DNA of 64,000 nucleotides, from NCBI GenBank assembly GCA_048013815.1, contig CM106585.1:1-64000 (forward strand). The letters run 5' to 3'. Positions 7,201 to 43,500 of this stretch are shown here, one piece after another; positions within the stretch are counted from its first letter, which is position 1; every line of letters begins with the position of its first letter. The notes below the pieces were generated by a model that was given only the letters and a program-made list of their open reading frames with translations, was not told where the DNA came from and made no database searches. Both the position numbers and the translations under genes were made by a program. The stretch comes from Setoptus koraiensis. Its lineage: Eukaryota; Animalia; Arthropoda.

Positions 7201-7479
7201 AGTACCTTCGATCTGTCTATCATAGGGTGAAGCGCAGTTACTTATTCTGATACTTTTCGGATTATCAGTCTGGGCGAAAAGCGTGAAATCTTGCAGCAGA
7301 AAGTTGCTTTAAATCATTTTGATAGCAATTTATTCACTTAATATTCACTTATTATCCCTTCAAACGATATTTGTCGGGCTTTTTACCTCAATAATTTTCC
7401 ATAACGAGACTTTATTAATATACAGATTGGTGAAATGCGTCGATATCTGAATGCTTTGCTACTAGCATTGGCAATAGTG

Positions 7480-8112
7480 AATGATCTAATGATGATTACT
7501 GGGAACCGATGGAAAACATTCGTTGGCAATTCGCGAGTCAAGTTTGACGCGCGCGAAAAAAAAGTAACTTTAAATTTGGCGCTTTTTACACTAGTCAAAC
7601 ACGAAGTTGAGTTGAAAAAACATGTGACTCGATCAAAACATGCGACTCGATGAAAACACGCATCAACCACACTTGATGGTCAGGTAACTAATCTAATTAA
7701 TTAGCCGTTTGTTTATGTTATTTTTCGCCCAGACATACCGGAAATAATACCATATCAAGTGTACTTGTGTGATCTTGTTTAGGACATCGACATTATTGAA
7801 TTAACTTTGCCCATTTATGTGGAATATCTCGTTGAGTCGAGCAACTTTCTACAAAGGATACAGTGGTAAATAGGAGCCGTGTGTGAAATAGATAACCTTT
7901 CATAATGTTTGTTGCTGTGAATATTGGTGCTAGACAATTGTGTCAGCACAAAAGAATATTGCTATCATCATATCAAGCCTCTAATCTATACAGTCAATAT
8001 AACAGATTTACCATTGCCAATCAAAATGTCAATGGCAACTATTCAAGTGTCAGACATCGTAGCACGTTGCCATACAACACTGGCCCAGCTTTTGTTCCAC
8101 AACAGGTAATCA
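7480..8112 (+). repeat. Left arm of ~630-bp inverted duplication (partner 20063-20700)
   Basis: Reverse complement of 20063-20700. About 2 mismatches over 7650-7905, 18 in 201 nt of exon 7905-8105, and more degenerate toward 7480. Confidence 0.95.
7545..7904 (+). promoter_or_regulatory. Putative promoter/5'UTR of LRPPRC (STOML2-derived), with a probable UTR intron at about 7684-7782
   Basis: E2F-like GCGCGAAAAA and TTTGGCGC motifs and repeated GACTCGA motifs, conserved in the STOML2 copy. CAG|GTAACT ... TTGTTTAG| intron signals. Confidence 0.5.
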
Positions 8113-10397
8113 ACAAATTATTATAGATCAACATCTAATCTTGTCTCATGCTATCCACATTGATGAACACAATCTCACCGAATTTCTCTCATCATTACTT
8201 GCTAAATTTTGTTCAAACTCATCAGGATGCCTGGAATGTTAACAAAATGGGCAGAATAGCCAGAGTATTGGAACATAGTCTGACTAATATTAATCATGTA
8301 ACTGTCATGGATCAAAGTACATTAGCGAGTCCGCGAACTCCGGCACGTGCTGCAAACCAAATCGATGAGCTGTCAAAGATCATAAATGATCTAAAGCGAC
8401 AATTGAATTACAATGCCAATACCACCTCCAAAAAGGTCATACAAGCAACAAGGCTTCTAAATGACATCATTGCTACGGGCAACCTAGATGATCTGAGAGC
8501 GAAACTGGGCTCTATTCCCAACTTTGGTGAAGTCCTGCTGGCTTCTTGTAGCTCGCATATGATTTATGAGACACCAGAAAGGCGAGAACACTTGGCTGGT
8601 CGAGTATGGTCATGTATTCAACAAATTTCTCAATTGAGCATTTCCCATTACAATACTTTATTGTTAGTATTTCTTGAAAACAACACCCAATTTGATCCAT
8701 CAAAAATCTTAGAAGACCTCAAGTCAAAGGGACTCACCCCTAACAGAGTGACTCTCCAGAGATTACTGCATAGATACTGCTTGATGGGCGATATGAAACA
8801 AGCCTTGGAAATACTTGAAGATATGAAAGAAAATAATATGGAAATTAATGAGACAGTGTTTGCCTCCCTTTTTATTGGGTACGGAAATATCCAGGATGCA
8901 CAGTCATTATCCGAACTACTTCAGTTGATGAAATCTAGTGGAGTTGAGGCGGGTGATAAATCTTACGCCGCTTATATTTGTGCTCATATCAACTGTGATA
9001 CATCGGATCAAACCATTAAAAATATCCTCGATGAAGCAACTAAAGAATATGATTTATCACCGAATCATTATATTGCAATTTTCACTGCTCTAGTCAAAAA
9101 GAGACCCGACTCGGCCTTAATTGCTGATATTACGCACAGAATTGAAACATCTACCAGAGATTTGTTCGATTATGGAGCCAAATCCAGGATTATCCACACC
9201 CTTATACAGGAGGGTTACTATCAGACGGCATCTTCTATATTTTGGAAAACAAAATTCACTGAGAGGATACTATCGAGTGGTCATTTTGGCAACTCTTACA
9301 TCGAAATTCTTGCCTCTTCGAAACAGGTCCCTGTTGACTTCATCATGCAAGAATGTCGGACCCTCATAGATCGAGACCTCAATATGTCGGCTCTCGAAAG
9401 AATATTTTTTTCGTTAGCAGCAAGTAATGGTAGAGCGGATGTGATAGAGCGAGTACTAGAGGTAATGGATTCGAAAGGCAAGGTTAGGTGTCACTATTAT
9501 TGGCCCTTGCTAGCTCAAGCAACCGACGTTAAAGGACTATTGAGTGTCTTGGAGCGGAAGATTAAACCGGATCAAGATCAGGAAGAACTATTCGATACAT
9601 TTGTAGAAATTGTTTGGCCAAGAATGGATGGTACTTCCTTTGAGGAGAGTTTCCAATCATTGTCTGACTTAAAATTTGATAAGCGTCTGCTATTTTTCTC
9701 TTATCTCGAGCTCGTATCTCGAGGCGATGACGATAGATCATCGAAACTTCAGAATGCAATCGCTACTGCCGAGAAAAAAGTGTTTGAACAAAAACCATTG
9801 AGCAAACAAGAAAATCTTACAGCACAACAACTCATCAGAAAGACGTTACATATTGACACTAAAACGGCCACTGAACTGTACATCACTGTCGCCATCAAAT
9901 TTGGAGTAGTTCAAGGCTCTCTTCAGCTAATGATGGCACTACTCAAAGAGAAAAACAAGGAAGATTTACAGAGAGTTATAGACGCAACTAATCGAATTTC
10001 TGGAGAAAATCAAACGTTGAATGAGTTAGTTATCGCATGTATACGAACTGGACATGTCAAACAAGCGGACAAAATTATCAGATCATCCCCCAACAGAATA
10101 CATACAGAACGCTTGGATAAGTGCGTAGATTATTTTGCCTCACATAAATGGGCCGATTCTTTGAAGAACCTTCTATTGTCTACCAAAGGCCTAAATAATT
10201 TTGACAGGGATAAAGCTTATTATCAGCTCTTTAGCGTTTATGATGACCTAAACCAGGCCAATGAGACCCTCGACCTATGCATTCAAATGCAGGAGGATGG
10301 ATATCAGTTAGGCATCGATTCTGCCACACTTGCGGCTTCCATTTTGGAGAGAAATAATTTGCAGGTACCATTTACCAAAGTTGACATTCAACAATGA
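7905..10397 (+). CDS. LRPPRC: LRPPRC/bicoid stability factor-like mitochondrial PPR protein, chimeric with STOML2 N-terminus; exons 7905-8105 and 8226-10397 (~790 aa)
   Basis: PPR repeats (SHYNTLLLVFLEN; PNRVTLQRLLHRYCLMGD), HYYWPLL motif and C-terminal ...ILERNNLQVPF match LRPPRC as recalled. Donor CAG|GTAATC at 8105/8106 and acceptor TCATCAG|GAT at 8225/8226 are in frame. Confidence 0.85.
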
Positions 10398-10414
10398 TCT
10401 GATGCTCATTTAGA

Positions 10415-13400
10415 CTAGCGTCTACGCTTAAAGGCTTGATTAAAACCATAACAAGCATTAAAATCGCCCCAATATTGCGTCTCCAAGAAGGCCTCCGAGT
10501 GGCAGTTGATTGGACCGGCCCGATGAACTATTAAGAGAAAGTGGTTATTGATATATTTTCAGAGTTACTTGAATTAATAGTTGATCGAGCATTATTAAAA
10601 GTTGAAACTGACTACTGTTAGCTACTACTATTACTTACTTGCTGCAACATCATAGCAATTTATGCGTCCATCGCCATCACAATCCCGGAGTCTTTTATCC
10701 ATATACAAATTCAACACTTTCTCTGCGCAGCCCTGATTGGTGACACAATCATAGAAGGCCCTCTCGTCTGCCGCTGGATCTCTACTGATGGCCTCTGGTG
10801 AGGTTAGCGTCTTAGATAAGCCAGATTCTAGCCATTGGTCATAACTTATAAGATACATTCCACACCTAGTGTGCTTGACATCGCTAGTCTGACATCTCGA
10901 TTTTAGATCGCATGATGTGCTTGCCTCACAGATACACTCGAAACATTCAGTTGTGATCTTTCTGCTACTAGCCCGATTTGCTAACAATCTCCTATCGGGT
11001 CTGTCTAACCGGAATGGACTATTTAAGGAAGACTTGTTTTCGTTTTCATTTGAAAATGGCTCATCCAAAGATATTGTTTCAAATGAGCCCGTTCTTTCAC
11101 GCGTGGGCAATGTCGGTTCACTTCTCCTACTAATTTCTGATATTTCAAGCGACTCCGACAGCGGCTCCGTTCTAGCTTCGTTGACTCGTAATCTTGCTCT
11201 AGTATCCACGGTTATTGGTGGTCTTGGGTACTCTGGTTCAGGCGACAATCTTTCAATGTCTACATTAGATGACGGCCTAGCTGTGGTTGTAGAAGTAGTG
11301 CTTGTTGTAGTAGGTCTTGGTGTTGTGGTGGTAGTTGTAGTAGTAGTGGCAGTAGTTGTTGTTGTCGAGCTAGGTCTAAAACTTGACGACAGCGATGATG
11401 TGGTGGTTCTGCGAGAGTTATCGGATGTTATAAATGGAGTTGGAATTCTGGAAGTGAAAGTGGGTGCCAGCGGATTAGCAATTGGCTGATTATGGTCCGG
11501 CCAATTGAACGAGCTAACACCACTTCCGGTTGGCCATAATGTCGTCGAAGTGGTGTCACTTGTTGCTGAAACTGATTCATCTGATACTGATGATACTTCA
11601 AGCCCTGAATTCGACATAGCAGTTGCGTCATCTAAAGTAGTTATTAGTGGCGGATTAGTGATTACAGAGGCAGGATTGTTGGTATCTTCGTTGGTATTGA
11701 TTGGTGCACCATTACCATTGGTGTCATCGACAGAAACTGTTGGCGGTTGTCGATTATTATTATTATTGGTGGTAGTAGAAGTAGATGGATTTTCATTATT
11801 ATTATTATTATTTATATCCAAACGCTCAAAGTTAGTGTCGTCTGAGAGGTCACTTTTTGGTGTTACAATGTCAGCAACTAGTGCCGGTATACGAGGATAG
11901 ACCTCTTCTAAAGAGGCACCTCTAACTACGCCCGAAGAGTTTCTAACAAATCCAGATGAATGATCTGTATCTCTAATAGGAGTACCTTCATTTGTTATGC
12001 GTCTGCTAGTGGAACTGAAAACATCTCTCGTTTCAAACTCTATTGTTACATCGTCTCTGGAAGTTTCTTCGCCATTGTTATTATTATTATTGCTTGGCAA
12101 TCTATTGTTGTTAGTTGATGATAATTCATTCCTTGTATTTCTATTGGTGTTTCTATTGTTTGTGGGTGGCCCTGATTGACCGATAGTGAGACGTCTGGGT
12201 AACTGTGGTATTGAATTCATAATTTCCGGTTGAATGGCAGGAAGATGATTTAGTGTGTTAGTTAAGGCTGTGGCTACATTTGGATTTGAACTGCTAGTTG
12301 ATGGAATTCTTGGAAACTCGTTACTCGTGCTTGCACTGGCCCCAACTGATGATGGCGGCCCGTTGTTGGTATTAGTTATCGGCGGTTTGATTAACGAACC
12401 ACCAGATGAGCTGGCTACAACAAATCTGTTAGCTGGATTGTTGTTGATGTCTGCTGGCCTGTCTATTGTTGTTGGCTGCCTTTGATTTGTATTACTGCCA
12501 GTAGCTGTGGTGATATTGATGCGAGCTCCTCCACGAGCTTGACGTTCTAAGCACCTGTTGAAACGTTCAAAGTATTTGTCGCCAGCACTTAATGCGCTCA
12601 TTTGTGTACAAGCTGCACCACCTAAATGATGGATAGCCCCATAATCTAGACAGGTGATTCTTCCATCGTTGTCGCAATCGCGCTTGTAACGTTGCATATA
12701 ATTTCTGACGGTCATCTCTGAACAATCTCTAGTCCTTGTACATGTCAGCCAATCTAAACCGGGCTTGCTGGCATCATTCCAATAGCCTGGTGTTATTGAG
12801 AATGGACCACAAACGTTGCCAAATCTACAATTGCGTCCACTTAAATCACAGTTTGATTGTGCCTCACAAATACAATTTAAACATTGTTTATCAATTTGTT
12901 GTTGTTGTTGCAAGTTCCAATTTGTGACAGCGAATCTATCCAAGAATGAAGTGGCATCACTATCGGAGTTGTCATTCAAATTGTCATTAATCGATGAGAA
13001 AAAATTGTTTGGAGAAAAACGATCGAATAGATCATCATTGTTGTTGTTTCTTAGAGGAAAATTCGATGCTGACCGCGTTGAAACCAACACTGGCCTAGTT
13101 TGATTTCCACCAGATCCACGCAATGTGCCATTTGACCTGTGATTTAGATTGATTTCGGCACCAATGTTTTCATTGATGCTAACCACTGCGCCTCTTGGGT
13201 CACGAGTATTCTCTATCGGCGAGCCTGCAGTTGATCGCGAACGATTGCCGGACACTATCACAGACACAACGGGCAAACGGTTGCTCAATCTAGCCGATTG
13301 TTGATTGTGATTGCTGTTATTTAGATTTACGTAACATTCGGATTTTGAGAATGCAGACCAAAATTTTGTTTTGTACAACCAGTCGGCATTACAAATATCA

Positions 13401-14041
13401 GCGCCAGCTCTATGTATTGAGGCCATGTCTGCACAAGTGATTCTATTGTCTCCATCGCAATCTTTGAGATATTTCAAGAAATAATTCTTGACCGTTCTAG
13501 CACTACAATTTTTATCCAGAGCACATTGTTCAAAATCTTTTGGACTGACCGACAACGATGTGACATAATGGTCTCCAATAGTGGCCTTTGGTCCGCTTAT
13601 TCTACTTGGTGACTTCTTTTGGGTGGTGGTGGCACCCGAGTCGGCCCAATAAGTGTAACTCAATTGATAGGCACCACAATAATAGGATTCACATCTTTTG
13701 CTGTTGTTAATCTGGCATCCGCTACTCGCCTCGCAAATACATTCGAGGCATCTGCCTAGGAATTGTTCATTATTAGAATTGTCATTCGATGGCACCAGAT
13801 TGTTGCCATTGACTGTCAATGATGCAATTGAGAAATCATTTACACAATTAATATAATGATGATTAGTAAAAGATGCTAGTATAGTTAGTATTATTAATAA
13901 TTGTACTGTATGTGTGCATAGTATGGAAAATTGAGATAACAAGCACGAGGGATATTGAGAAAATTGTTGCTGATGAAATGTATAATTGGCGCAATATTTT
14001 TCAACACGCCGTCTCAACACGTGCTCCTTGCGCCTCATCAT
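10415..14041 (-). CDS. Multi-domain i-type lysozyme/destabilase-like protein with 3 domains and long low-complexity linkers; exons 14041-10639 and 10527-10415 (~1171 aa)
   Basis: Three CxxCICEAxSxC...CGxxxIxxxYW...DCxxDGxIxCxD...IH repeats. A phase-1 intron 10638-10528 (GTAAGT...TTAATAG) completes domain 3 (IHRAGPINC...YWGDFNAC). Hydrophobic N-terminal segment. Start codon uncertain. Confidence 0.85.
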
Positions 14042-16039
14042 AATATCTTGGTTAAAGAGAGTTCTTTTGTTTGATTGTTTCTTGTTTTTTCTTTGTTTCT
14101 CTTCTCTTATATTGTTGACTGTCAATGTTTGGTTGCGATAATGTTGTTGTTGTTGCTGTTATAATTGTATTGTTGTCAATCAATTAGCTCTTGATTGATG
14201 TGTATAAATAAACATATAGATGATTACACAGGTCCAAGTTTATTATAATAGTAATTACTGAGGCAGTCGTTCAGCAATGAGCAAATCATTGTGCATTGCG
14301 ATAACAGCAAGGAATTGTTTGTTGATTTTGGTCGCGATTTGTGGCTAGCTGATGCATATGCTGAAGATCAAAAGACCAATTAGTTAGTTTTTGTTGGTAG
14401 CAGTAGACAACAACAATGTAGCTGTTGATATCTCCCTCAAACTTGATTCTCCAATTCGTGTAATAGAAACAGAGACACAGAGAACGACGAGAGAGCGAGA
14501 GATAATAAAAAAAAGCAACAAGACAGATGCGATGAATGCAATTCTCCTAATCTCAGGTGAGCACAGGTAACAATTGCGAGCGACTGCTAGTCTATTCATA
14601 AGCGCTAATGATTTTTTATTCCGACAACAAACAAATAACAGAATAGTTAGTAATAAGAAAGATTGGCTGAGACAACATGAGAACAAAACGAAACTCGTGA
14701 TGATGATCGGATGTCGATTGGCAACAGATCAATTATAATGAAAATAACTTTTGAACTAAAGTAGGTGGCAATCATTGAAAGTGAAAGTGACTGAAACGAC
14801 TTTCAGTTAAAAGATTAACATCGTCACTTGTTGCATTAAATATATCTTTTGTTGTTGCTGTTGTGGTTGTGGTTGTGGCTGTTGCAGTTGTGGTTGTGGC
14901 TGTTGCAGTTGTGGTTGTTGCAGTTGTGGTTGTTCCTTCATCGTAAGCACCACTTGGATTTCGTTTAGTTACATTATCTTTCTCTCTTCGTGTCTCTCTA
15001 AATAGTAGCTTTAAGTGGTTGCGTTATAAGTTAATTGTGGTTTAGCCACCTCACAGCTAATAATAGTAAGTGGTACGCGTATGCCCGTCTGTGAACTCCG
15101 ACTATCGATGGGCAAAGGAAACTAAATCAGTCTTTATCATGAGTGAGCACTAACAATATAAATTTATTGAGATTAGGATCAGTAATTTGAATAAATATGC
15201 CCGTGGAACAAATTGACAACCGGTGTTGTTGTTGTTGTTGTGAATAATAAAAGTTATGGGACGAGAGCATGAATAGAATGTATAGTTTCCTTTCGGGTAT
15301 CTCAATATCTTTCTCACTGCACAGCTTATCTACTCAGTTAGACAAGCTATAAGATTCTTTGAACAAAACAAAACATAACGATGAGAATCTTTACGACACC
15401 TCAATGATTTAACACTGATCTTCTCTTTTTTATTTTATTATTATTATTTTTGTTACCACTCTAATCTAATATACACCTAGTATGCTAAGTGAATTAATTC
15501 CTTGATACTATTTGTTCGACACTTCTATCAACGCCATTCGATACTATCAATAATAATAATAATAATAATAATAATGATCGTAAAGGTGCACACTCACGGT
15601 TATTACGGCTGTAGTAGACAGGTAACAAGTATGGCGCCGGAAAGCAAGTTTGATGGTATTAATGGTTGGCAAGACGAGACAACAAGAAGCCTTTTAATAA
15701 TATTTCGTTAATATAATACAACATGCTTGTAGGTAACAACTTTAACAACACAAACAATCACAGCAAATGCTAGTGACGGTAATCCAAGTGTCGAATCTTT
15801 GATATTTATCTACTGTCTACTTCTCTCTTAATCTCGTAATCTTTATCGAAGGCACTGCGTTATTGTTGACGTTTTCTTGCAGAGCATAAATATTAATTTA
15901 CTTGTTGTTGTAGTTGCTGTTGTTGTCGTCGTCGTCAAGTGTATCTCAATTGAGAAAATACTGCAAGATTATAGTGAATAAATCAGGACTAAAAGCCGGT
16001 CGTGCTAGCCTTTGTGTAAACTCATAAATAATATCACTT

Positions 16040-18517
16040 TTAATATAGCTCATCTTTTTCAGTTTCGATCCTTTCATGGGCATATTTCTTACTAAGAGAT
16101 TTCTCGTATTCTCCAACTGCGTCACCAGAGCCCTCAAGAATCCATTTGTAAGTCAGCAGACCCTCCATGCCGACAGGACCGCGAGCGTGAATTTTCGAGG
16201 TACTGATACCAACTTCTGCCCCCAATCCAAATCTGTATCCGTCTGCGAATCTGGTGCTGCAATTCTTGAAAACGCAAGCTGAATCAACTTGTGCTAAAAA
16301 CAACTTAGCCGTGTCATCTAGAAAATTAATTACAATAATAGTATTCATTAGTAATTAAGTCTTTATGTGTATGTGCAGTATGGGTACATTTGGTTCAGAA
16401 TGATGAACCGTAACGTAACGTAACTTACCGTCTTCTGTCACAATGGCATCTGTGTGTCCACTGCCATTAGCATTAATTATATCGATGGCCTCCGAGACTG
16501 ACTCAACTATTTCAACAGTGCACTCTAGTGAGCCATATTCAACTCCCAATTCACCAATAGACAAATCTATCGGAAACTCTTTGGCCCATTTCGGTCCGGC
16601 ATTGATTTTTACGTGATTCTCTCTCAATTTTCTACACAATTTATCCATTAAGTTGTCGCCACCATTTTCCACAACAGTCAATGATCTGTGCACCAACAGA
16701 GTCTCCATGGCATTACAAGCGGCTGGATAATCACATTTTGAGTCTGTAACTATTTTGACCGCATCATCAAAATTGGCGTACTTATCGAGATATACATGAC
16801 AAATGCCCTCAGAATGGCCTAATACGGGGATGTTCTTACTCTGCTCTTGAATACTACGAACCAATTGATTAGAACCTCTCGGTATAATGAGATCAATATA
16901 TTTATCGAGTGACACCAATTCACTAACTCGTTCTCTTGAGTCTACTAACTGAACGGCATTGGCACAAGAATACTTATTCAAGGCCTCCTGAATGATTTTC
17001 CATAGGCATCGGTTCGAGTTTGCGGCCTCTTTGCCTCCTTTGGCCAATAAACTATTTCCCGTAGCTATGGACAGGCCAGCTATTTGGGGAAAACAGTCTG
17101 GTCTAGATTCAAATATAACCAACAATTGACCAATTGGGCATGTCACTTGATTTAATATCATGCCATTAGCGACTTTTTTGCTCTGTATTATTCGATTCAA
17201 CTGAGTTTCTGAAGCATCGGCAATTTGATTGAGGCCAGCAGTGAGACTATTCAATTTATCTGATGTAAGTTTCAATCGTGACAATAGAGCCTTGTTCGAT
17301 AGTAATGGGTCCAGTTGTGCCAGTTGCATATCTTTGTCATTTTCAGACAAAATAAGTTCTTTTCTTGTTTGTAACAACTGTGCTATATCACGTATAATAT
17401 CCGCTCTTTCGTACGGTTTCAACGATCTAAGTACATTGCCACCTTTTTGTGCCATAATTGCCAAATCAACAGATTGGTTGTCATCATCTGTATCAGTGAA
17501 GAATGTTCCCACTTTTTGGCCCTTAACTACGGCACTGATTGCCTCATCGTGGGTGCCGTTGCAAATCACAACCGATGTTCCACGACTCCAAGCCCATAAT
17601 GCAGATTTAACTTTAGATTGCATGCCACCTAAACCAACGCTAGATTTTCCACCAAATTCTATTCTATCAGCATGATTTTGTTTAGTGCAGTATGTTGACA
17701 AAAATTTCACTCCTTTTTTATCTGGAGGACCAGAATATAGGCCGTCAACATTGGATAATAATATCATTAGATCACAATTTAATTCAACAGCCAATATAGA
17801 GGCAAGTGAATCGTTGTCCTCCAGCAATATCTCCTGCATACTGGCATTCATAGTCATCTCTTTTTCTAAATCTTTTGTTACAAAGGCCTCAACAGCGTCG
17901 TTTGTGTTGACTATCGGCACTATGTTCAAACTTAACAAATTCAACATCGTTGATCTTAGCTGTTTCCGACTGGACTCTTCAATAAAGTCTGCCTTTTTCA
18001 CCAGCACTTGTGCCACCTTACAGTCATATTGGCCAAATATGCTCCTATAGAAGCTCATCAATGAACTCTGGCCGACGGCTGCAGCAGCCCTATTATTGCT
18101 ATCAACAGGCGGAGCTAGATTAACGGTATCGTTGGAGATTGATTTCTTTGCTGTCAATGTTCTGATACTTTTTGTTTTCATTACTTCATCACCCATCTCT
18201 TTTCTACCAAACGCAACAGCCCCGCTTGTAATTAAAATTACCTCTTTGCCTTTTTGCTGTAACTCCACCATTTGTTCTACGATGGACGTCAATCTTGAGG
18301 CGGCCAGTATACCACCATCACGTGTTATGACAGCACTGCCCACCTTGACAACGATTCTGTGGGCATCCTTAAGTCCTTCTCTGGTCTCTATGGCCCTCTT
18401 CAACAGGTTACCAGAATTTTCTGATGTGTTAGTATTTGTTGAGATAAATCTCGTAAATGCTATTCTGTACATCCGTTGCCTAGAGTTTGTTAAAGCTATC
18501 CGAAAAAGCATTCTCAT
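16040..18517 (-). CDS. ALDH18A1: Delta-1-pyrroline-5-carboxylate synthase (glutamate 5-kinase + gamma-glutamyl phosphate reductase); exons 18517-16429 and 16317-16040 (788 aa)
   Basis: [67 protein letters not shown] and HARGPVG motifs. Mitochondrial-presequence-like N-terminus. Phase-1 intron 16428-16318. Confidence 0.95.
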
Positions 18518-18821: not shown

Positions 18822-20270
18822 TTATTTATTTTGTTTTATCGCTGGAGGATCATGATTTGAGTTGTTACCCTTAGACTCTATAGAGAGGGTCTTGTACACT
18901 TGAAAGGCCTAGATAAATATGAGTCAAACAAAATAGATAAATAGATGTATTGTTAGATGAAGTGTGTGAGACATACAAATTAGGAAAAGTTCAGAGATCT
19001 GATAGATTATGATCTGGCAGCAAGCATAATGAATGGTGCGATTATAATCTATTGCATATGATGCGAACAACCAATAGATTAAGATGAGATACAAAGTAGC
19101 TTGAGTGTTGTGACGAATTTCACATTTGCGCTCGCGGTGCAAATGTGAAATTTGTCACAACACCATGGAGCCCTCTGTTGTAATTAGTTAGTAATATATT
19201 AGTTACCTGTGCTATCATGCTGTTGACATCGCCAGCATTGGCTGGTAGTACCAACGTATTGTTTGTCTTGGCTAAATTTGAAAAAGCTTTAACATATTGT
19301 CCGGCAATCATGAAGGTGGCAGCCTCAATAGAGTTATTTTGTTTGATGGAACTGGCCACAGTAGTGATAGCATTGGCCAAACCTTGAGCCTGATTTGTTT
19401 GCTCAATTTTGGATGCCTCAGATCTCAATATAGTGGATTTTTTAACACCCTCGGCAGAATTAATTTCGGCATCGCGTTGACCCTCAGATTCAAGTATTTG
19501 TGCTCTCTTTTTTCTCTCAGCTTCCACTTGTAATTGCATTGCCACTTGTACTCTATCAGGTAACTTAATGTCCCTTATTTCGTATCTGAGACACGATATT
19601 CCCCAAGGGCTGGTTGCATTGTTAATCGCGCCCACCATGATAGTATTGAGTGACTCGCGCTCCCTGAATACGGAATCCAATTGTATCTTGCCTATCTCGG
19701 AACGCATAGTTGTTTGGGCTAGCTGAGTGCAGGCGAATTCTGGATTATCTATATTGTATGAGGCTTTATATGGATCGAAGACTTTAAGATAGAGAACACC
19801 ATCTAAAGTCAGAGTTACGTTGTCGGCGGTGACCGCAGCCTGTTGAGGTATCTCAAATACCATCTCTTTAAGATTCTGAACGTAACTAATCTTATCCAAG
19901 AGAGGCAATAGAAAATTGGGACCGGGCTCCAATACTTTGGCGAATCTACCCATCCTTTCAACAACCCAGGCTTCCTAACGAATGAAAAAATCAGATTAAA
20001 CAAAAGATTAGAGTTAGATTATGTTGATTGCTTGAGACAAGAAGCTGATGATCACAATGTGCTGATTACCTGTTGTGGAACGAACACTAGGCCAGTGTTG
20101 AAAGGCAACGTGCTACGATGTCTAACACTTGAATAGTTGCCATTAACATTTTGATTGGCAATGGTAAATTTGTTATATTGACTATATAAATTAGAGGCTT
20201 GACATGACGACAATAATATTCTTTTGTGCTGACCCAATTGTCTGGCACCAATATTCACAGCAACAAACAT
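18822..20270 (-). CDS. STOML2: Stomatin-like protein 2, mitochondrial (SPFH domain); exons 20270-20070, 19974-19207, 18908-18822 (351 aa)
   Basis: FVPQQ|EAWVVERMGRF, AQTTMRSEIGK, WGISCLRYEIRDI, VEAERKKRA and AQ|AFQVY motifs. Both introns GT-AG, phase 0. Confidence 0.93.
19105..19163. other. Near-perfect 25-bp stem / 9-nt loop hairpin in STOML2 intron 2
   Basis: GTGTTGTGACGAATTTCACATTTGC (19105-19129) pairs with GCAAATGTGAAATTTGTCACAACAC (19139-19163), with one G.T position. Confidence 0.85.
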
Positions 20271-20700
20271 TATGAAAGGTTATCTATTTTACACACGGCT
20301 CCTATTTACCACTGTATCCTTTGTAGAAAGTTGCTCGACTCAACGAGATATTCCACATAAATGGGCAAAGTTAATTCAATAATGTCGATGTCCTAAACAA
20401 GATCACACAAGTACACTTGATATGGTATTATTGCCGGTATGTCTGGGCGAAAAATAACATAAACAAACGGCTAATTAATTAGATTAGTTACCTGACCATC
20501 AAGTGTGGTTGATGCGTGTTTTCATCGAGTCACATGTTCTCCGACTCGACCCCTTCATCTCTTTGACTCGAGTGAAAAGCGCCAAATTCGAAGTTCTTTT
20601 TTTTCGCGCGCGCGCGTCATCAAACTTGACGACCAGATTAGAATCGCCAACTGTCCACGGATTTTGTTCATTGGTTCACAGAAGCCAGCATCAGATCAAT
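20063..20700 (-). repeat. Right arm of inverted duplication: native STOML2 upstream region, 5'UTR and exon 1
   Basis: Reverse complement of 7480-8112. Confidence 0.95.
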
Positions 20701-20871
20701 CATTGATACCCATACTTTTAGTAGGGTATGAGATCAGATAATCACATTATAGATGATCGCCAAAGCATCGCTACTCATTAATGTCTAATCTATGTATCAG
20801 CTAATACCGGGTGTGAGCCAATATCGCGAACGAGAGCTCGGGCCAGAGTAATAAGATTACAACGCTTCCAC

Positions 20872-20873
<2 letters not shown>

Positions 20874-20933
<60 letters not shown>
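20874..20933. repeat. (GA)~30 microsatellite
   Basis: Direct reading. Confidence 0.95.
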
Positions 20934-37510: not shown

Positions 37511-40500
37511 GCATTAGTAATGGTGACAGCAGCAATGGCGCATTTTTGTTTAATGGGGCCGATCAAGCCGAGAATTTATTTCATCTCCAACTGGAGCCCA
37601 TTTATTATGGCACAATAACTGAGAGCGAGCATGCAGTCGTACTGGCACCGGCTATTCGGGTGGACAAAGGTTTGTATAAATAGTCCTGTTGCAGTCGATT
37701 GTATTTCTTTATGATAGCGATTGTGTTTTAACTGTTTTTTCTTATAATACATTCATCAATTGTTTAAAAATTTGCATATTGACAAATGAAAAAAATTTGA
37801 AATGTAAAATTGTGAAATTTGTACGAAAAAAAAAAATGTTTGAAAATCGTGTAGATGAAGTGTGCGATCTTGAGATAGAAAACAGTGAACATTATACCGA
37901 TGGCTTTCCATTTCAATTAATTTGGAGCGACAGAATAAACGGCGAGCCAATTGTAGCGGCAACAAAACATTTGTCATGCGAGACGAGGAATCATTACAGG
38001 CTATCGTTGATAGCGATCGGTTGTAATGGGCAACGTTCAAAACCGTAAGTAAGCCATTTAGCATTACTCAAGACTGCTGTTCGATTGAGTTCAGTCTACT
38101 ATAATTGTTTTATAATTATTATGCACGTAGACAGTGATGATTTGCGTAATGCCTATGTCTATGATTGGTTAATTTGTTTGTTGGTGCTAATTAATTAATT
38201 GGATGAGTAGAGCTGCTACAAATGAATTGATGAGCGCAGCAAAGAAACAATTTGAGCCTCGAAAATGTATTTATGTTTTGTTTCATGGTAATAATGTTGC
38301 GATGATGACACAGATATTTTTATAGATATAAATTATATCATATAATGTCAGCCCTGAGACGAGCCTAACTAATTCTCAATCAAATTTCCAACAACAACCA
38401 CAACAACCGCAACAACCATCACAGTTCACTGGTCAATATAAAAGTGGAGGATGTCAATGAATACGGCCCAGAGTTTAGTGAATTGAATTATGAGATACAA
38501 TTGAATGTTATGGACAATAACGATGATACAAGTGATGGCAATACTACTCAATATACGTATTGGTGGACCGACAATAGTGGCGATGTATTGCTACGAGTGA
38601 ATGCCTCGGACAAAGATTGTAGTTTGCAATTCAATACTATTTGTCGTATGCAACTACTCGATCACTCTAATACTAGTAACAGTAATTTTGTTGTTGGTAG
38701 TGGCACCCCAACACAAAATAGAAAATTATTGTTACAACAACAACAGCAACAACAACAGCAACAACAACAACAACATGACAATGGCAACTATTATGACAAG
38801 CCATCAGCGTCACAATTTTCTGTCGATTCATATGGACGAATCAGATTAGTGAGAGAGTTCACAAACAATCAACTTAAATCACTAATCAATCACGGTTTTA
38901 AATTTCAAGTTGTCGCGCACGATTGTTTTGGCAGAAAATCACAAAGGCCAGCAAATGTTACAATTAAAGTGCAACGACAATGCAAGCCAACAATCAAAGG
39001 TAAGTTGACATACACACATGTAGTTGCGTCATTAGTATGTGTTTAGACTGTCGGCTTTACAATTAGTGCAGCGTAGAGTGTGTGTGTGTGCAGTCACAAC
39101 AAGACTTTGCGCTGTTTTGTTGAAAGTTTGCGTCGCCTAATTGATGCTTGTGTGAGACGAGATAGCTTGACATATCCAAGGCTATCCAATTAGCGTGTGC
39201 GACAACAATTACAAGCTGACAGGTGATTGCCAGCTAAAGCAGCCAGCTAGTTGGCCAATTTGGCCAATACACACACTGACTGTCAGCGAATGACACACGC
39301 CGGCACAGATTAGCTTTCTTGATAGGTCCAGCCTAAACTTGTGGGTCTAGCCTAAACTAGCAGGTCTAGCCCAGACTAGCAGCATCAGCCCAGACTAGCA
39401 GCACTAGCCTAAAGTAGCGGTTCTAGGTAGGCGCGTTTCAGCGGAAACGGTTACTCTTAATTTGCAAGTGGTCGCTAGGTGGTCGTTAGGTGGTCGTTAG
39501 GTGGTCGCTAGGTGGTCGCTAGGTGGTCGCTAGGTGCTGTGTTGCATTGGCGCGCTGTGAAGTATGCATGGACAGTATGCTGTGTAGCGGCTAAAATGTG
39601 GCTAGATTTATTTGGCCTGTCGACACGGGCACAAACATTAGTGGACATGCAAACAGCTGACAATTAAATTGGCGCAAATTGTTGTTGATTGTCCATTGGA
39701 ATGCGCTTTGGTTGGCATTACAGGTGAGACTGTTGATGTGGCATGTTTGTTATTTGCAAATGACAGGTTGTTGCTGTAGTCGCATACAAATCGCATATAA
39801 ATCGCTTATGACGCTTGTATCGGTTACATGGTCACATGATATCACATAAGCGATATAGCGAGTATAAGCGCCATTTATATGCGACAGTAAGACAGATAAG
39901 TGAACAAAACAGCCAGTAATGCTGTGGCACCCAAACTGTTGGCTGCCACTTGCGGCCGCCATTGTCGTCGACTGGCACAGACAACAATTGATTCCATTGC
40001 ACTTTATTTGCAAAATCACCATCGCCAACGGGAACAAATCGATCGCACAACGTATCGATTTGCACACTTACGTAACGGCTAACGAACGAACGCCAGAGAT
40101 AAGACGCTCTCTATCTGTTTCTCATCACACTGCCCTTTATCGCCGCCATGCACAATGGGTGCTGCTCACAAATGCATCTGTCACTATATTTATATATACA
40201 CTCGCTCGCTGTATATACTGGCTGCTGTGTACAATAAAAGAAAAAGTTATATAATAAAAATCCCTTTTGGTTTTGCAACTGGCAGCCTTCACAAGCCGCT
40301 GTTATCGGTTCAATGTCGTACGTAGCCTACGTAACGTAGGCACGGCAAAGCAGCTCGACTCGACAAGCCGCACCGACAACTAACTGGCAAATCTAAATAG
40401 ATATTGGCCATTGTTGAGCAGCAAAAGAATTTTTATTTCGTTGGCCTCTTCTGTTCGTTGCGCATCCTCTGATAAGTTGTTGAGCTGAGTGCGGCTCTCC

Positions 40501-43500
40501 GTCTATTGTCAGTGCCGTCGGCTTGCCAATTGCGATTCGCGTTGCCGGCGGCTGCAATGGGCACTCGGGAGAGTCGAGTCCCGACGAAAGAATTAAAATG
40601 AGAATCGCCGTTAGTTGGAGTTGAGAATCTGCGAATAACAATGAAGCGACGCCGCCCAAAAAGATGCCCGCCGTTGCTGGCTGATTTTGCATTTGTGTCC
40701 GCGAGCATCTATGCGCCGCGCGGCCCCATGCGAGTCTGTGCGAGTCTGTGCGAGTCTATGCCAGTCTATGCAAGTCCGGCGGCTCGCAATGGCTAAATTG
40801 TAATGTTTGAAATCAGTGAGTTAAATCATCGATTCATCCGCTCGGGAATCTCGAAAGTAGTTAAGCTCAGCAGATGGATGCGAGCGGCCAGCCCGACTGC
40901 GCGTCTCCGTGGGAACGCGCCCTAAGTGGGCCAGTCGTTTGGGCCGCCACCGCCGCACGTGGGAGCCCGGTAAGTGGGAGCGTCATTTGTGGGGGCGAGC
41001 AAGTGGGAGCGTCGTCGATGGGAGCAAGTGGGCGCCGGTTGCGTGGCCAATAGTTTAAGTTGCTTGATTGGCGCCAGTTCAGCTGGTTAATATATTCCAT
41101 TACAATTCATTCCATTCCATTTGACTTGTCGTGCTACCGTTATTGGTTGGCGCTCGGGGTCGCGCGCATTGCAATTGCAATTCCAATGCGATGTCGCGAG
41201 TCGCGAGTCGCAACTCGCGATTTCAAGCGGAGGCGCGAGTCCGCACGAGGGCAAAACGGCCCGCACTGCGCCGGCTATAGGGCCGGCGCATGGCGGCACA
41301 GCACGCAGACACGGCTGACCTAGCGACATTGGACCTTAGAGAGAAATGGCGACATCGGCAGCTAGCAGCAACACGGCGACTTGGGCACATAGCGACTTGA
41401 CGCCGGCAAAACGGAGCGTAACAGCAGAAGTGTATTCGGTTGAGTTGGCGTAGTGCGCTTTGCTTTTTGGTCATGTTGTTGTCGCTCGTTTGGCATGTCG
41501 TCGTCGTTTCTTGTTGTCGCTTGATCGCTTGATCGCTTGCAACTGGCTGCACAGGCCCTATGCTGGCCCCTTTGTCGCCGCGTACACGCAACAACAATTG
41601 CAACAGCCCAATAATGGCCGCTCGGCGACTCGCGACTCGCGAATGTCGCTATAGTCATATCGGCTGTAATGTTGCTGGCGACACTCAAATGTGCGCCCGT
41701 GTCAGCCGGCCCGCCGACGTTAGCTAGTGGGAGTCGCCAGTGTCGCTAGTGTCGCTAGTGTCGCTAGTGTCGCTAGTGTCGCTAGTGTCGCTGGTGTCGC
41801 TAGTGTCGCTGGTGTCGCTAGTGTCGCTGGTGTCGCTAGTGTCGCTGGTGTCGCTGGTGGGACTGCCCGAGCTAGAGTCGGGCGGCGAGAGTGCAAATGG
41901 AAATAAAAATAAAAGTGTAAACGCCAAGAGTGCCACACCAAATGGCGATGTAAGTGTCAGACACACGCGCAAGGTGGGAGGTGAACTATTACCATCGGGG
42001 CTGGCTGTTAGGTGGCGCTCGGAGCTATTCGAGGCGTCGCGCGTTTTTATTTTCATGCGCATTTATCTTTTGGGGCCCAAAACGCAAAACGAGCCCGACG
42101 CGAGACGCGACCGACGCAAAACGACAGCGACAGTCGCAGCGGACAGGGCTGTCCACTTTTGGGTGTGTGTGTTGGCAATTTTGTCTCTGGCTGGCGTCGG
42201 TGTTTTGCATTTGGGGGCCCCATTGCTGGTTGGGCCAAATGAGCTGGCGTGGGCCGTGTCAATGGTTCGACACATGAGACAAAAATCGATTTATTGGCCA
42301 TAAATCCATATTTTCGCTTTTGGCGCTCTCGCCTATTACTCAAATGACACTTAAGACACACACACTGCGCATCAAGCCAGATTTATTGGGGCACACATGA
42401 CAGCGCCGTTGGCCCCAAAAGTGTCCATGTCACTCGATGTCGGCGTGTTGAGTCGCGCCTCACTGAGTGACACCACTTTTCATAACAGTCAAAAGTGGTA
42501 AAAAACAAATATCCAGTTTACATGATGACGCGCCATAAAAGCGATTGATGCCACTGCCACCGGCGATACACCAGCGATACACCGGCGATACACCGGCGAT
42601 ACACCAACGACAACTAACTAGGCACCAACAATGTACAACAAGAGCAATTTACTGGTCGCCAGCAGCGTGAGCTACCCAACAGCGCGCTATAACTGCCCCT
42701 TCATAAGCGTTACGTTAAGTTACGTAACAGTCATAAGTGGTGCAGGTTAGCTCACCTGGTGGCTGCTGCTGCCACCACTGACAGTGCTGCCAATTGGGCG
42801 AGCCTGCGTGTGCCCAATTTGAGCCAATATCGCACCCACTGGCCGCCATATTGAATGGTGGGCCCCTCTTTTCATCTCTTATCTCTTCTCATATCTTTGC
42901 TATCTATCTAAAACTAATTTTGCTTTAAATTAAATCACCGACATCTAACCATTAGCTGGCAGGTGCTAGCCTTGTGTTTTTGTTTCTCTGCTGCCGCCAG
43001 AGTTGTTGTTGTTGTTGTTGCATCATCCATTCTCAGTTTCGCTCACAATGCTGCTGGGGCCAAGCGAAGGCAAGTCTGCGTGGATAAGACGCTCATATTG
43101 CCTGGCTCACATGGCGTTGTCTAGTTTCATGCCAGCACAAGCCTCGTGCCTCATGCCGTCTCATCGGCTTGTCTTATCTGCCACATACTATATATATACT
43201 TGCAAACTGATGGCATTAGACAAGATGGCTCAAGACGCGATGAAACGAGATGAGACCGAGCGGCCAATACAAGCAATATAAGCACATTATATACCAAGCT
43301 AGCCATATAATGCGCTGTTACACAATTGGCTGTTTGAAAGGTTGGCTTGTGATTTCGCGTTGCTGCTTCCATTATTCTGTACGTATTATGTAACGTGCTA
43401 ATGGAAGTTTTACTTTTTTCTTTCCCCTTCCCCTTCCCTTTTCCTTTCTCCATCTTCTTCTCATTCGTCTTCAGCTTCTTATTCGTCTTCTGCTTCTTGC

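Follow-up and report, generated by a model that had tools for sequence, protein, structure and literature searches.

The first 64,000 nucleotides of contig CM106585.1 of Setoptus koraiensis (the window) contain an LRPPRC gene which, at the DNA level, is a genuine chimera. Its first part is a duplicated STOML2 5' end, which would probably be spliced to the LRPPRC body and direct the import of LRPPRC, and sequence comparison indicates gene conversion between the two copies of this 5' end. LRPPRC is an essential-type mitochondrial gene acting in mRNA stability and translation, and STOML2 encodes an inner-membrane scaffold. Both parent genes can be identified, the donor is intact, and the junction is in frame. 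The features concerned are the following:

7478 to 7640, forward strand: outer part of the left arm, a diverged copy of the STOML2 upstream (promoter-like) region
7641 to 7930, forward strand: near-identical core of the left arm, comprising the putative 5' leader and the first 26 nt of the CDS
7905 to 8105, forward strand: LRPPRC exon 1, copied from STOML2 exon 1 (67 presequence-like codons, with FVPQQ at the end)
8106 to 8225, forward strand: LRPPRC intron 1, phase 0, GT...CAG, copied with the module
8226 to 8305, forward strand: STOML2-derived segment of exon 2, DAWNVNKMGRIARVLE followed by a decayed part up to ..INHV
8306 to 10397, forward strand: native LRPPRC-type PPR coding sequence to the stop codon (short form, 790 aa with exon 1)
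19207 to 19974, reverse strand: STOML2 exon 2, SPFH/Band_7 and Band_7_C (Pfam Band_7 1e-31, Band_7_C 5e-19)
20270 to 20070 and 20069 to 19975, reverse strand: STOML2 exon 1 and intron, respectively
19885 to 20702, reverse strand: right arm, the donor copy, with the STOML2 upstream region, exon 1, intron and exon-2 start

The left arm (7478-8305, plus strand) is an inverted copy of the STOML2 5' end at 20702-19885 of the minus strand. This module, about 0.83 kb in size with 12 kb separating the arms, consists of some 430 bp of upstream sequence, the 201-nt exon 1, the phase-0 intron and the first 16 to 25 codons of exon 2. When 7300-9000 was compared with the window by blastn, 7478-8160 matched 20702-20021 of the minus strand (86% over 704 nt) and 8224-8272 matched 19976-19928 (78%); the 23-mer at the ATG occurred exactly twice, against 0 occurrences expected by chance, and no third copy of the arms was found within the window. 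The preliminary description had placed the borrowed part at 7905-8273, but the copied unit proved larger, starting at about 7478 (~430 bp before the ATG) and ending at about 8305, the latter limit being placed by comparison with a related species. Its proposal that LRPPRC took its promoter region, presequence exon and intron position from STOML2 is borne out, as a copy at the DNA level, by the arm alignments. Divergence between the arms is unevenly distributed. The outer part (7478-7640 versus 20702-20535) is 72% identical when its 35 gap columns are disregarded, and contains a conserved GC/A-rich block and the TTTGGCGC motif at 7575-7582. The core (7641-7930) is identical to the right arm at 287 of 290 positions, the flanking non-coding parts being 70-72% identical, and includes a possible 5'UTR intron (GTAACT...TTTAG, 7683-7782). 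A structured RNA was ruled out as the cause of the 99% identity of the core, as no Rfam family matches.

Within exon 1, 18 of 201 nucleotides and 6 of 67 amino acids differ between 7905-8105 and 20270-20070, with no indels. In both copies, the last residues of the exon are FVPQQ and the next nucleotides GTAATCA, the donor site of LRPPRC being identical to that of STOML2. The differences comprise 12 synonymous and 6 nonsynonymous steps, so that about two-thirds are synonymous, as had been described earlier, and the accompanying suggestion of constraint on both copies holds in that dN/dS between the arms is 0.11 (dS 0.35); the recruited part is thus under coding constraint in the recipient. At 0.28, the exon-1 pS matches the divergence between the arms outside coding sequence (0.29), and with the latter as reference a neutral LRPPRC copy predicts at least 16 to 23 nonsynonymous differences, compared with the 6 seen (P = 3e-5 to 4e-3); a synonymous/nonsynonymous test confined to exon 1 is borderline when transition bias is allowed for (P = 0.004-0.06). 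The absence of indels from the 201-nt exon compares with 29 to 35 gap columns in the neighbouring 120 to 163 nt. The 67-residue peptide contains no D or E and 6 K/R; the native presequences of distant LRPPRCs are likewise acid-poor (first D/E at residues 37-58), and the alternative starts show early acidic residues (E9 in S. koraiensis, D2 in the relative). Together, the dN/dS of 0.11, the lack of indels and the lack of acidic residues speak for translation of the LRPPRC copy as a presequence. When the 67-aa peptide was used as query in a word-based protein search, no exon 1 of the relative was matched.

The two genes each carry a phase-0 intron at the same position, as was originally noted, of 120 nt in LRPPRC and 95 nt in STOML2 (20069-19975), with 70% identity and 29 gap columns between them. 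In S. koraiensis LRPPRC, the acceptor is preceded by a 99-nt stretch free of AG. The exon-2 starts, DAWNVNKMGRIARVLE in LRPPRC and EAWVVERMGRFAKVLE in STOML2, agree at 10 of 16 aa, in line with the earlier count. Nucleotide identity to STOML2 is 81% over 8247-8273 and 67% over 8226-8246, so that the seven codons before Met 8247 have been preserved no better than the intron (70%). This Met is conserved in the relative (MGRIARVLE.. versus MDRIAKVLE..). The junction with native LRPPRC sequence lies at about 8275-8305, and the reading frame is continuous across the copied intron into the LRPPRC-type frame. An in-frame ATG at 8148, inside the intron, opens an ORF of 749 aa (8148-10397); it was ruled out as the ancestral start, having no counterpart in the relative.

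Beyond the STOML2-derived intron, the LRPPRC-type PPR frame runs for 723 codons. PPR repeats are recognised by the Pfam families PPR_3 (7.5e-13), PPR_2 (3.6e-11), PPR and PPR_1, all above cut-offs. In the PDB, human LRPPRC (8any, chain A5; E 5e-48) matches best, with exon-2 residues 101-461 aligned to human residues 123-479; among natural proteins, plant PPRs come next at ~1e-19. Atlas neighbours of ranks 1-4, 8 and 17 are named LRPPRC, and a HMMER search yielded 115 proteins with E <= 1e-30, of which many have ~1,300-1,400 aa. By these matches the body is closest to LRPPRC and not to PTCD1/2/3, PRORP or POLRMT. The full-length architecture of ~1,300-1,400 aa with its C-terminal third is absent, the protein stopping after 790 aa at ..VPFTKVDIQQ. 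As the proteins of the nearest relatives are similarly short (799-846 aa) and terminate at this motif as well, with a collinear C-terminus, the 790-aa protein is judged from the comparison to be a short lineage-specific form and not a truncation specific to this locus. It shares the PPR repeats with human LRPPRC (8any) and Drosophila bsf, and differs from the human protein in its length (790 aa instead of ~1,400) and in its STOML2-derived N-terminal 67 + ~25 residues. Since comparison with the relative gives a dN/dS of 0.17 across 714 codons, the chimeric gene is, by this measure, functional. No second LRPPRC occurs within the window, and when the contigs of the 5 next-best HMMER matches (P0124-P0128) were looked up, none came from the run of the relative.

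The gene of the right arm is a regular STOML2 (SLP-2), showing SPFH/Band_7, Band_7_C and the conserved N-terminal FVPQQEAWVVERMGRF motif. Its exon 2 is 93% identical to the STOML2 of the relative (P0004) and 71% to that of Aceria tosichella. Residue 1 of exon 2 aligns with position 7 of the Pfam Band_7 profile, in agreement with the assignment of FVPQQ to the start of the STOML2 SPFH region in the preliminary description. Among ten STOML2 orthologues, from mites to molluscs, 9 carry ..LPxNTxxxFVP(Q/H)QEAWVVERMG(R/K)F; in the tenth, P0004, whose gene call begins at the Met, only MGRF is seen. The FVPQQ/EAWVVERMGRF motif is absent from five more distant LRPPRC proteins (799-846 aa), which are single reading frames on genomic contigs with presequences of their own. 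Because the motif belongs to STOML2 in distant animals and is missing from distant LRPPRCs, STOML2 is the donor, as initially proposed, and LRPPRC as donor is ruled out. The phase-0 intron after FVPQQ distinguishes the right-arm gene from the STOML2 genes examined in more distant relatives, which are single ORFs lacking this intron.

As the preliminary description had suggested looking among relatives, it is relevant that a second species (dS ~0.75; Logan run SRR33593474) carries the same LRPPRC/STOML2 fusion on one contig and is thus already in the derived state. Its LRPPRC contig (L001) and STOML2 contig (L002) have their first 30-mer in common, which lies within the intron (39/40 identical), and then diverge; this shared start is an assembly-graph fork. 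L001 leads from the STOML2-like exon-2 start to LRPPRC and a convergent destabilase gene, and L002 from STOML2 to P5CS. The relative keeps the longer STOML2 match (MDRIAKVLEPGANVLL vs MGRFAKVLEPGPNFLL). There, the original acceptor CAG reads CGG and is destroyed, so that, on this sequence, exon 2 must begin either 18 nt further on or at the Met that both species share. Only one AG (L001 88-89) occurs in the 92 nt that precede the ATG; it is in frame and lies 50 nt past a TACTAAT branch site, and a stop lies 19 codons upstream of the Met with no in-frame ATG between. Between the two species, the seven codons before the Met are unrelated (0/7 aa, 11/21 nt by hand count on the alignment), and conservation is high from the Met onward.

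Between-species dS is 0.75 for both LRPPRC and STOML2, versus 0.35 for the arm exon 1. This difference, with the 99% identity of the 290-bp core, indicates that the arms, as sequences, are younger than the species split and have undergone gene conversion. The core at 7641-7930 reads as a recent conversion tract, and in the relative the two copies agree at 39 of 40 positions as far as the branch site, beyond which they no longer resemble each other. The paralogues are therefore less diverged than the species split which they predate, and show sharply bounded tracts, as in concerted evolution. As the arms have been homogenised in this way, the 91% identity of exon 1 gives no date for the fusion.

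Three other explanations were weighed against the translated chimera. We consider it unlikely that the module contributes only a promoter and a non-coding leader, with translation from Met 8247, exon 1 acting as an upstream reading frame or being skipped, and an internal or non-classical import signal. Such a start would agree with the presence of the Met in both species, exactly where orthologue conservation rises sharply, with the loss of the original acceptor in the relative, and with the seven preceding codons being, relative to STOML2, no better conserved than the intron. It leaves unaccounted for, however, the protein-level constraint on exon 1 of the LRPPRC arm and its freedom from indels since the last homogenisation. 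Moreover, a transcript from the copied promoter would meet the exon-1 ATG first, with an intact donor site downstream; the single AG after the branch site of the relative is in frame; and the early acidic residue noted above is unlike all native LRPPRC presequences examined.

Less probable still is that the left arm is an inert by-product of rearrangement, refreshed by conversion, with LRPPRC transcribed from a start of its own inside or past the former intron (ATG 8148 or 8247). In favour of this, both species show clear conversion between the arms, an open frame runs from ATG 8148, and staggered-break inversions are known to leave inverted duplications at the ends of a block as a neutral by-product (PMC1885836). 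Because conversion removes synonymous and nonsynonymous differences equally, however, it cannot explain the 12 versus 6 differences accumulated over a dS of 0.35. In addition, ATG 8148 lacks a counterpart in the relative, where the stop upstream of the Met closes the frame, and the upstream motif blocks are kept in the diverged outer part of both arms. Mis-joins can create inverted repeats, yet an assembly artefact is scarcely credible here, nothing specific speaking for it. The arms differ by 14% in a structured pattern, 92-97% of the 31-mers sampled from 7600-10400 are present in three runs from different samples, and in a separate assembly, made from another species, a single contig joins the STOML2-like intron and exon-2 start to LRPPRC. 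Four poly-A/oligo-dT RNA runs that share a species label with three small runs containing the sequence gave 0 matching reads, which indicates that S. koraiensis is absent from them, the label probably belonging to a host or to a mixed sample; the protein collection contained no transcript-derived protein of S. koraiensis.

For the translated chimera, we propose that, in the common ancestor of both species, about 0.83 kb of the STOML2 5' end was copied, as an inverted duplicate, to a site at a distance of 12 kb. The copy would have comprised upstream sequence, 5' leader, exon 1, the phase-0 intron and ~25 exon-2 codons, and would have joined LRPPRC in frame, replacing the promoter, the presequence and roughly the first 100 codons of that gene. 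Transcription would now start from the copied promoter, exon 1 (7905-8105) would be spliced to exon 2 (8226 onward), and the 67-residue acid-free STOML2 peptide would serve as the mitochondrial import signal of the 790-aa LRPPRC. The sequence comparison shows that gene conversion between the arms continues; it keeps the LRPPRC module close to that of the working STOML2, and probably keeps both genes under similar control. A bolder version, which we advance only tentatively, is that LRPPRC and STOML2 share a promoter-plus-presequence module kept alike by conversion, and may be co-regulated with nearly the same import signal, the block between the arms flipping without cost.

The arms lie in opposite orientation at the two ends of a single four-gene block (7478-8305 and 19885-20702) and are non-repetitive, which makes a staggered-break inversion the simplest origin; one of the breaks may have interrupted the 5' end of STOML2 and the other the LRPPRC first exon. 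No neighbours are shared with the window on five LRPPRC and two STOML2 contigs of distant relatives. A tblastn search for a remnant of the original LRPPRC 5' end, using the first 150 residues of four distant LRPPRCs, regions too poorly conserved for a negative outcome to be informative, returned only noise near the right arm.

The chimera reveals no new kind of mechanism, and the gene is a conserved one of known kind. In Drosophila, jingwei and Sdic are chimeric genes that arose by partial gene duplication and 5'-exon recruitment. As in these, a promoter and first exon(s) were joined in frame to an unrelated gene body while the donor stayed intact; here, in contrast, the recipient is no free new duplicate but appears to be the only detectable LRPPRC, with its own 5' end replaced. 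In plants, cytochrome c1, rps14/sdh2 and rps11 gained presequences by exon shuffling or by sharing with a nuclear gene, the signal being supplied to genes newly transferred from the organelle. The taking of a presequence exon and intron from another gene for a mitochondrial protein is common to both situations, but the animal LRPPRC already had a presequence, which was swapped, the promoter came along, and the copies evolve in concert. In the Drosophila melanogaster group, staggered breaks leave inverted duplications of 46 bp to 1.9 kb at inversion breakpoints (PMC1885836, which also mentions Sdic; Ranz et al. 2007). The likeness lies in a non-repetitive gene piece inverted at both ends of a block, its ~0.8 kb falling within that range; the differences are that the inversion is only inferred here, that the block is only 12 kb, that the piece became the 5' end of another gene, and that the copies still exchange sequence.

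If the spliced message is confirmed, S. koraiensis and its relative would provide a clear animal case of a nuclear gene for a mitochondrial protein having swapped its import signal and promoter for those of a neighbour, the likely cause being a small inversion-type rearrangement and the borrowed part being kept in step by conversion. ORF-based calls (749 aa from ATG 8148; 723 aa, conserved Met) would then probably miss the true start. Presequences would be exchangeable between an inner-membrane protein and a matrix protein, and the pair would offer a dated two-species case for conversion tracts and selection on a shared 5' module.

Four genes lie in the block listed below, in a stretch that reads as eukaryotic: its introns are short and its single-exon genes long.

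Genes of the block (coordinates, strand, assignment)
7905-8105 plus 8226-10397 (+): PPR protein gene (LRPPRC); Pfam and ORF listing
10631-14125 (-): three-domain destabilase/i-type lysozyme ORF; Pfam and ORF listing
16355-18517 (-): P5CS-like ORF; Pfam and ORF listing
20270-20070 (exon 1), 20069-19975 (intron), 19974-19207 (exon 2) (-): STOML2; Band_7 and Band_7_C in exon 2

When nucleotides 7300-9000 were compared with the whole window (blastn), the only further match was the 5' end of STOML2, with 7478-8160 aligning to 20702-20021 (-) at 86% over 704 nt and 8224-8272 to 19976-19928 (-) at 78%. The 23 nt at the start codon are found at just two places in the window, 7905 (+) and 20270 (-), where chance would give none. 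Given this gene order, the matching segments (left and right arms) are inverted copies bounding the four-gene block, each supplying the 5' end of a gene that points inward. The preliminary description had recognized the copying but underestimated its size: the unit starts at 7478, about 430 bp upstream of the ATG and, judged from a related species, ends near 8305. The destabilase ORF (1164 aa; three Destabilase domains, Pfam 5.6e-74) is convergent with LRPPRC, as in that relative (contig L001, 2495-3247), and the P5CS-like ORF (720 aa; AA_kinase plus Aldedh) follows STOML2 directly, the relative's STOML2 contig likewise reaching the P5CS start (L002, 1546-1656). A (CT)n microsatellite occupies 20870-20900, just beyond the right arm, and G+C peaks at 0.535 at 40001-42000 against about 0.39 in the rest of the window.

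Between the two first exons there are 18 nucleotide differences in 201 and 6 amino-acid differences in 67, with no indels; 12 steps are synonymous and 6 nonsynonymous, so that the similarity and synonymous excess first described both hold. Both copies end in FVPQQ followed by GTAATCA, and both introns are phase 0 (120 nt in LRPPRC, 95 nt in STOML2). The second exons start with DAWNVNKMGRIARVLE in the PPR gene and EAWVVERMGRFAKVLE in STOML2 (10 of 16 residues identical), and because STOML2 exon-2 residue 1 aligns to position 7 of the Pfam Band_7 profile, FVPQQ does lie at the start of the SPFH domain, as had been proposed. Near the junction, three hydrophobic STOML2 residues are replaced in the LRPPRC copy (L61P, V62A and an exon-2 V to N), changes which, we conjecture, would suit a soluble matrix protein.

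Upstream, a TTTGGCGC motif adjoining a CGCGCGAAAAAAAAG block is kept in both arms (7575-7582, +; 20586-20579, -) despite 72% identity in their outer part; it resembles an E2F site and may be a shared promoter element. At 7620-7660 (+) a roughly 20-nt unit is doubled in tandem (ACATGTGACTCGATCAAAAC / ATGCGACTCGATGAAAAC) and single in the right arm. A candidate 100-nt 5'-leader intron (7683-7782, +; CAG/GTAACTAAT ... TTGTTTAG/GAC) falls within a stretch 99% identical between the arms, the right arm having the matching part.

The recipient is LRPPRC. Human LRPPRC (8any, chain A5) is the best solved-structure match of the 723-aa exon-2 product (E 5e-48; residues 101-461 to human 123-479), all its nearest Atlas clusters are named LRPPRC, the neighbours being mostly arthropod, and a profile search of 1.84 billion representatives returned 115 matches at E <= 1e-30, many about 1,300-1,400 aa long. 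The five nearest matches outside the sister species (P0124-P0128) have 651-846 aa and, like the window protein, end at a common ..VPF motif; its length of 790 aa with exon 1 is therefore a lineage trait and not a local truncation. A dN/dS of 0.17 against the relative over 714 codons indicates a working gene.

To identify the donor, ten STOML2 orthologues (mites, a scorpion and unnamed Logan contigs) were inspected. The string ..LPxNTxxxFVP(Q/H)QEAWVVERMG(R/K)F is unbroken in nine; the tenth, the relative's P0004, has its start assigned to the Met, which leaves only MGRF of the string. The motif is absent from all five distant LRPPRC proteins, each a single reading frame on a genomic contig, four of which have presequences of their own (e.g. 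MALSLRAATRLRQLISRAPH.. and MSLITRLARAFVSVRRNHSRF...), while the predicted P0126 begins at a later Met (MNENETNFDP...). In the window protein, alignment places the first LRPPRC-homologous residues near exon-2 residues 28-45 (..MDQS.., ..QIDELSKIINDLKRQL..). These observations make STOML2 the donor, in agreement with the preliminary description, and its module appears to have displaced LRPPRC's own promoter and presequence along with about its first 100 codons. Among named sequences, the window's STOML2 is closest to that of the eriophyoid mite Aceria tosichella (71%; spiders and scorpions, 64-66%); the animal is likely an acariform, eriophyoid-like mite. As distant STOML2 genes are uninterrupted ORFs of 368-379 aa (L008, 10001-11140; L009, 10001-11107), the phase-0 intron after FVPQQ is either specific to the window lineage or lost elsewhere.

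The relative (Logan run SRR33593474) has the fusion too. P0001, 76% identical and the only close LRPPRC relative in a collection of 5.8 billion proteins, starts with MDRIAKVLEPGANVLL and matches STOML2 (MGRFAKVLEPGPNFLL) over a longer stretch than the window copy does. Its genomic contig, L001, joins a STOML2-like intron and exon-2 start to LRPPRC, opening 92 nt before the called ATG and, past LRPPRC, reaching the convergent destabilase gene. The STOML2 of this run, P0004 (93% identical), is on L002, which runs into the start of P5CS. The two contigs share their first 30 nt (caatcttctctctttcaatcaacttaatct) and 39 of their first 40, a stretch that corresponds to the mid-portion of the STOML2 intron in the window and stops just past a TACTAAT branch-site motif, beyond which they are unalike. 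At a fork, a de Bruijn assembler yields two contigs starting with the same k-1-mer. We infer that the relative's two loci share near-identical sequence upstream of this fork; the common start thus puts the STOML2 intron in front of the relative's LRPPRC, and presumably exon 1 as well, so that the fusion predates the split of the two species. The fusion is real and not an artefact, since 92-97% of the 31-mers of 7600-10400 are present in three runs and the same junction occurs in another species' assembly.

Arms predating the split should differ by at least the between-species dS (0.76 for STOML2, 0.75 for LRPPRC), and they differ by less.

Identity of the left arm to the right arm
Outer upstream, 7478-7640 (+): 72%, 35 gap columns
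Core, 7641-7930 (+): 99% (287/290)
Exon 1: 91%, dS 0.35
Intron: 70%, 29 gap columns
Exon 2 before the Met: 67%
Exon 2, Met to E16: 81%

In a four-sequence alignment the exon-2 start clusters by gene and the relative's mid-intron by species. Together with the low divergence, this shows that the arms were homogenised after the split, over different tracts in each species, and evolve in concert. The latest conversion tract in the window species spans the 5' leader and 26 nt at the start of the coding sequence; a comparison with Rfam gave no family to account for the 99% identity of the core.

As to whether exon 1 is translated as part of LRPPRC, the sequence evidence leads us to favour a spliced chimera as the probable state. 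Exon-1 dN/dS since the last homogenisation is 0.11; its pS (0.28) matches what the arms show in non-coding sequence (0.29), so exon 1 has been diverging for as long as they have. A neutral LRPPRC copy should show at least 16-23 nonsynonymous differences, against the 6 observed (P for 6 or fewer, 3e-5 to 4e-3, by transition bias and neutral-rate error; a weaker test on exon 1 only gives 0.004-0.06), which makes an inert relic quite improbable. Indels, none of them in exon 1, are many in the adjacent non-coding parts. The exon-1 peptide, with no acidic residue and six K/R in 67 aa, resembles the native presequences of distant LRPPRCs (first D/E at residues 37-58). The donor site of the exon is the same as that of STOML2, and the acceptor is preceded by 99 nt free of AG; of the window's AG-to-AG gaps, only about 1% are that long. 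The relative's contig has a single AG in the 92 nt ahead of the ATG; it lies 50 nt past TACTAAT and keeps the frame (ACA ATG GAC). Against the chimera, the original acceptor is gone in the relative (CAG to CGG), the seven codons before the conserved Met (8247) are unrelated between the species, conservation being high from the Met on, and those of the window are kept no better than the intron. These three points fit either an 18-nt acceptor shift in the relative or translation from the Met, with the module contributing promoter and leader only. We consider the latter unlikely: an N-terminus from Met 8247 has E at position 9, and the relative's has D at 2. Starting at the intron ATG (8148) would give no K/R in 30 residues. 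Four RNA runs (X7, X10, X11 and X12) contained no reads from the locus; their species label probably denotes a host or mixed sample.

Inverted non-repetitive copies at the ends of a block are the signature of staggered-break inversions, and duplications of this type, of 46 bp to about 1.9 kb, were described for 17 of the 29 inversions fixed in the Drosophila melanogaster group (PMC1885836). A staggered break across the 5' end of STOML2, paired with a break inside LRPPRC's first exon, would in a single event create both arms in their present orientation, join the genes in frame and remove the native LRPPRC start. Template-switch duplication without inversion is possible; the relative already has the derived gene order, more distant relatives show no synteny with the window and have STOML2 without the intron, and no remnant of the old LRPPRC start was detected. 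We regard the partial duplication as probably inversion-linked. The mechanism itself is not new, and the locus appears to be a conserved chimeric gene whose general kind is known, a 5' module being recruited through partial duplication. As a presequence and promoter swap between two animal mitochondrial genes, with continuing conversion, it would make a good case study.
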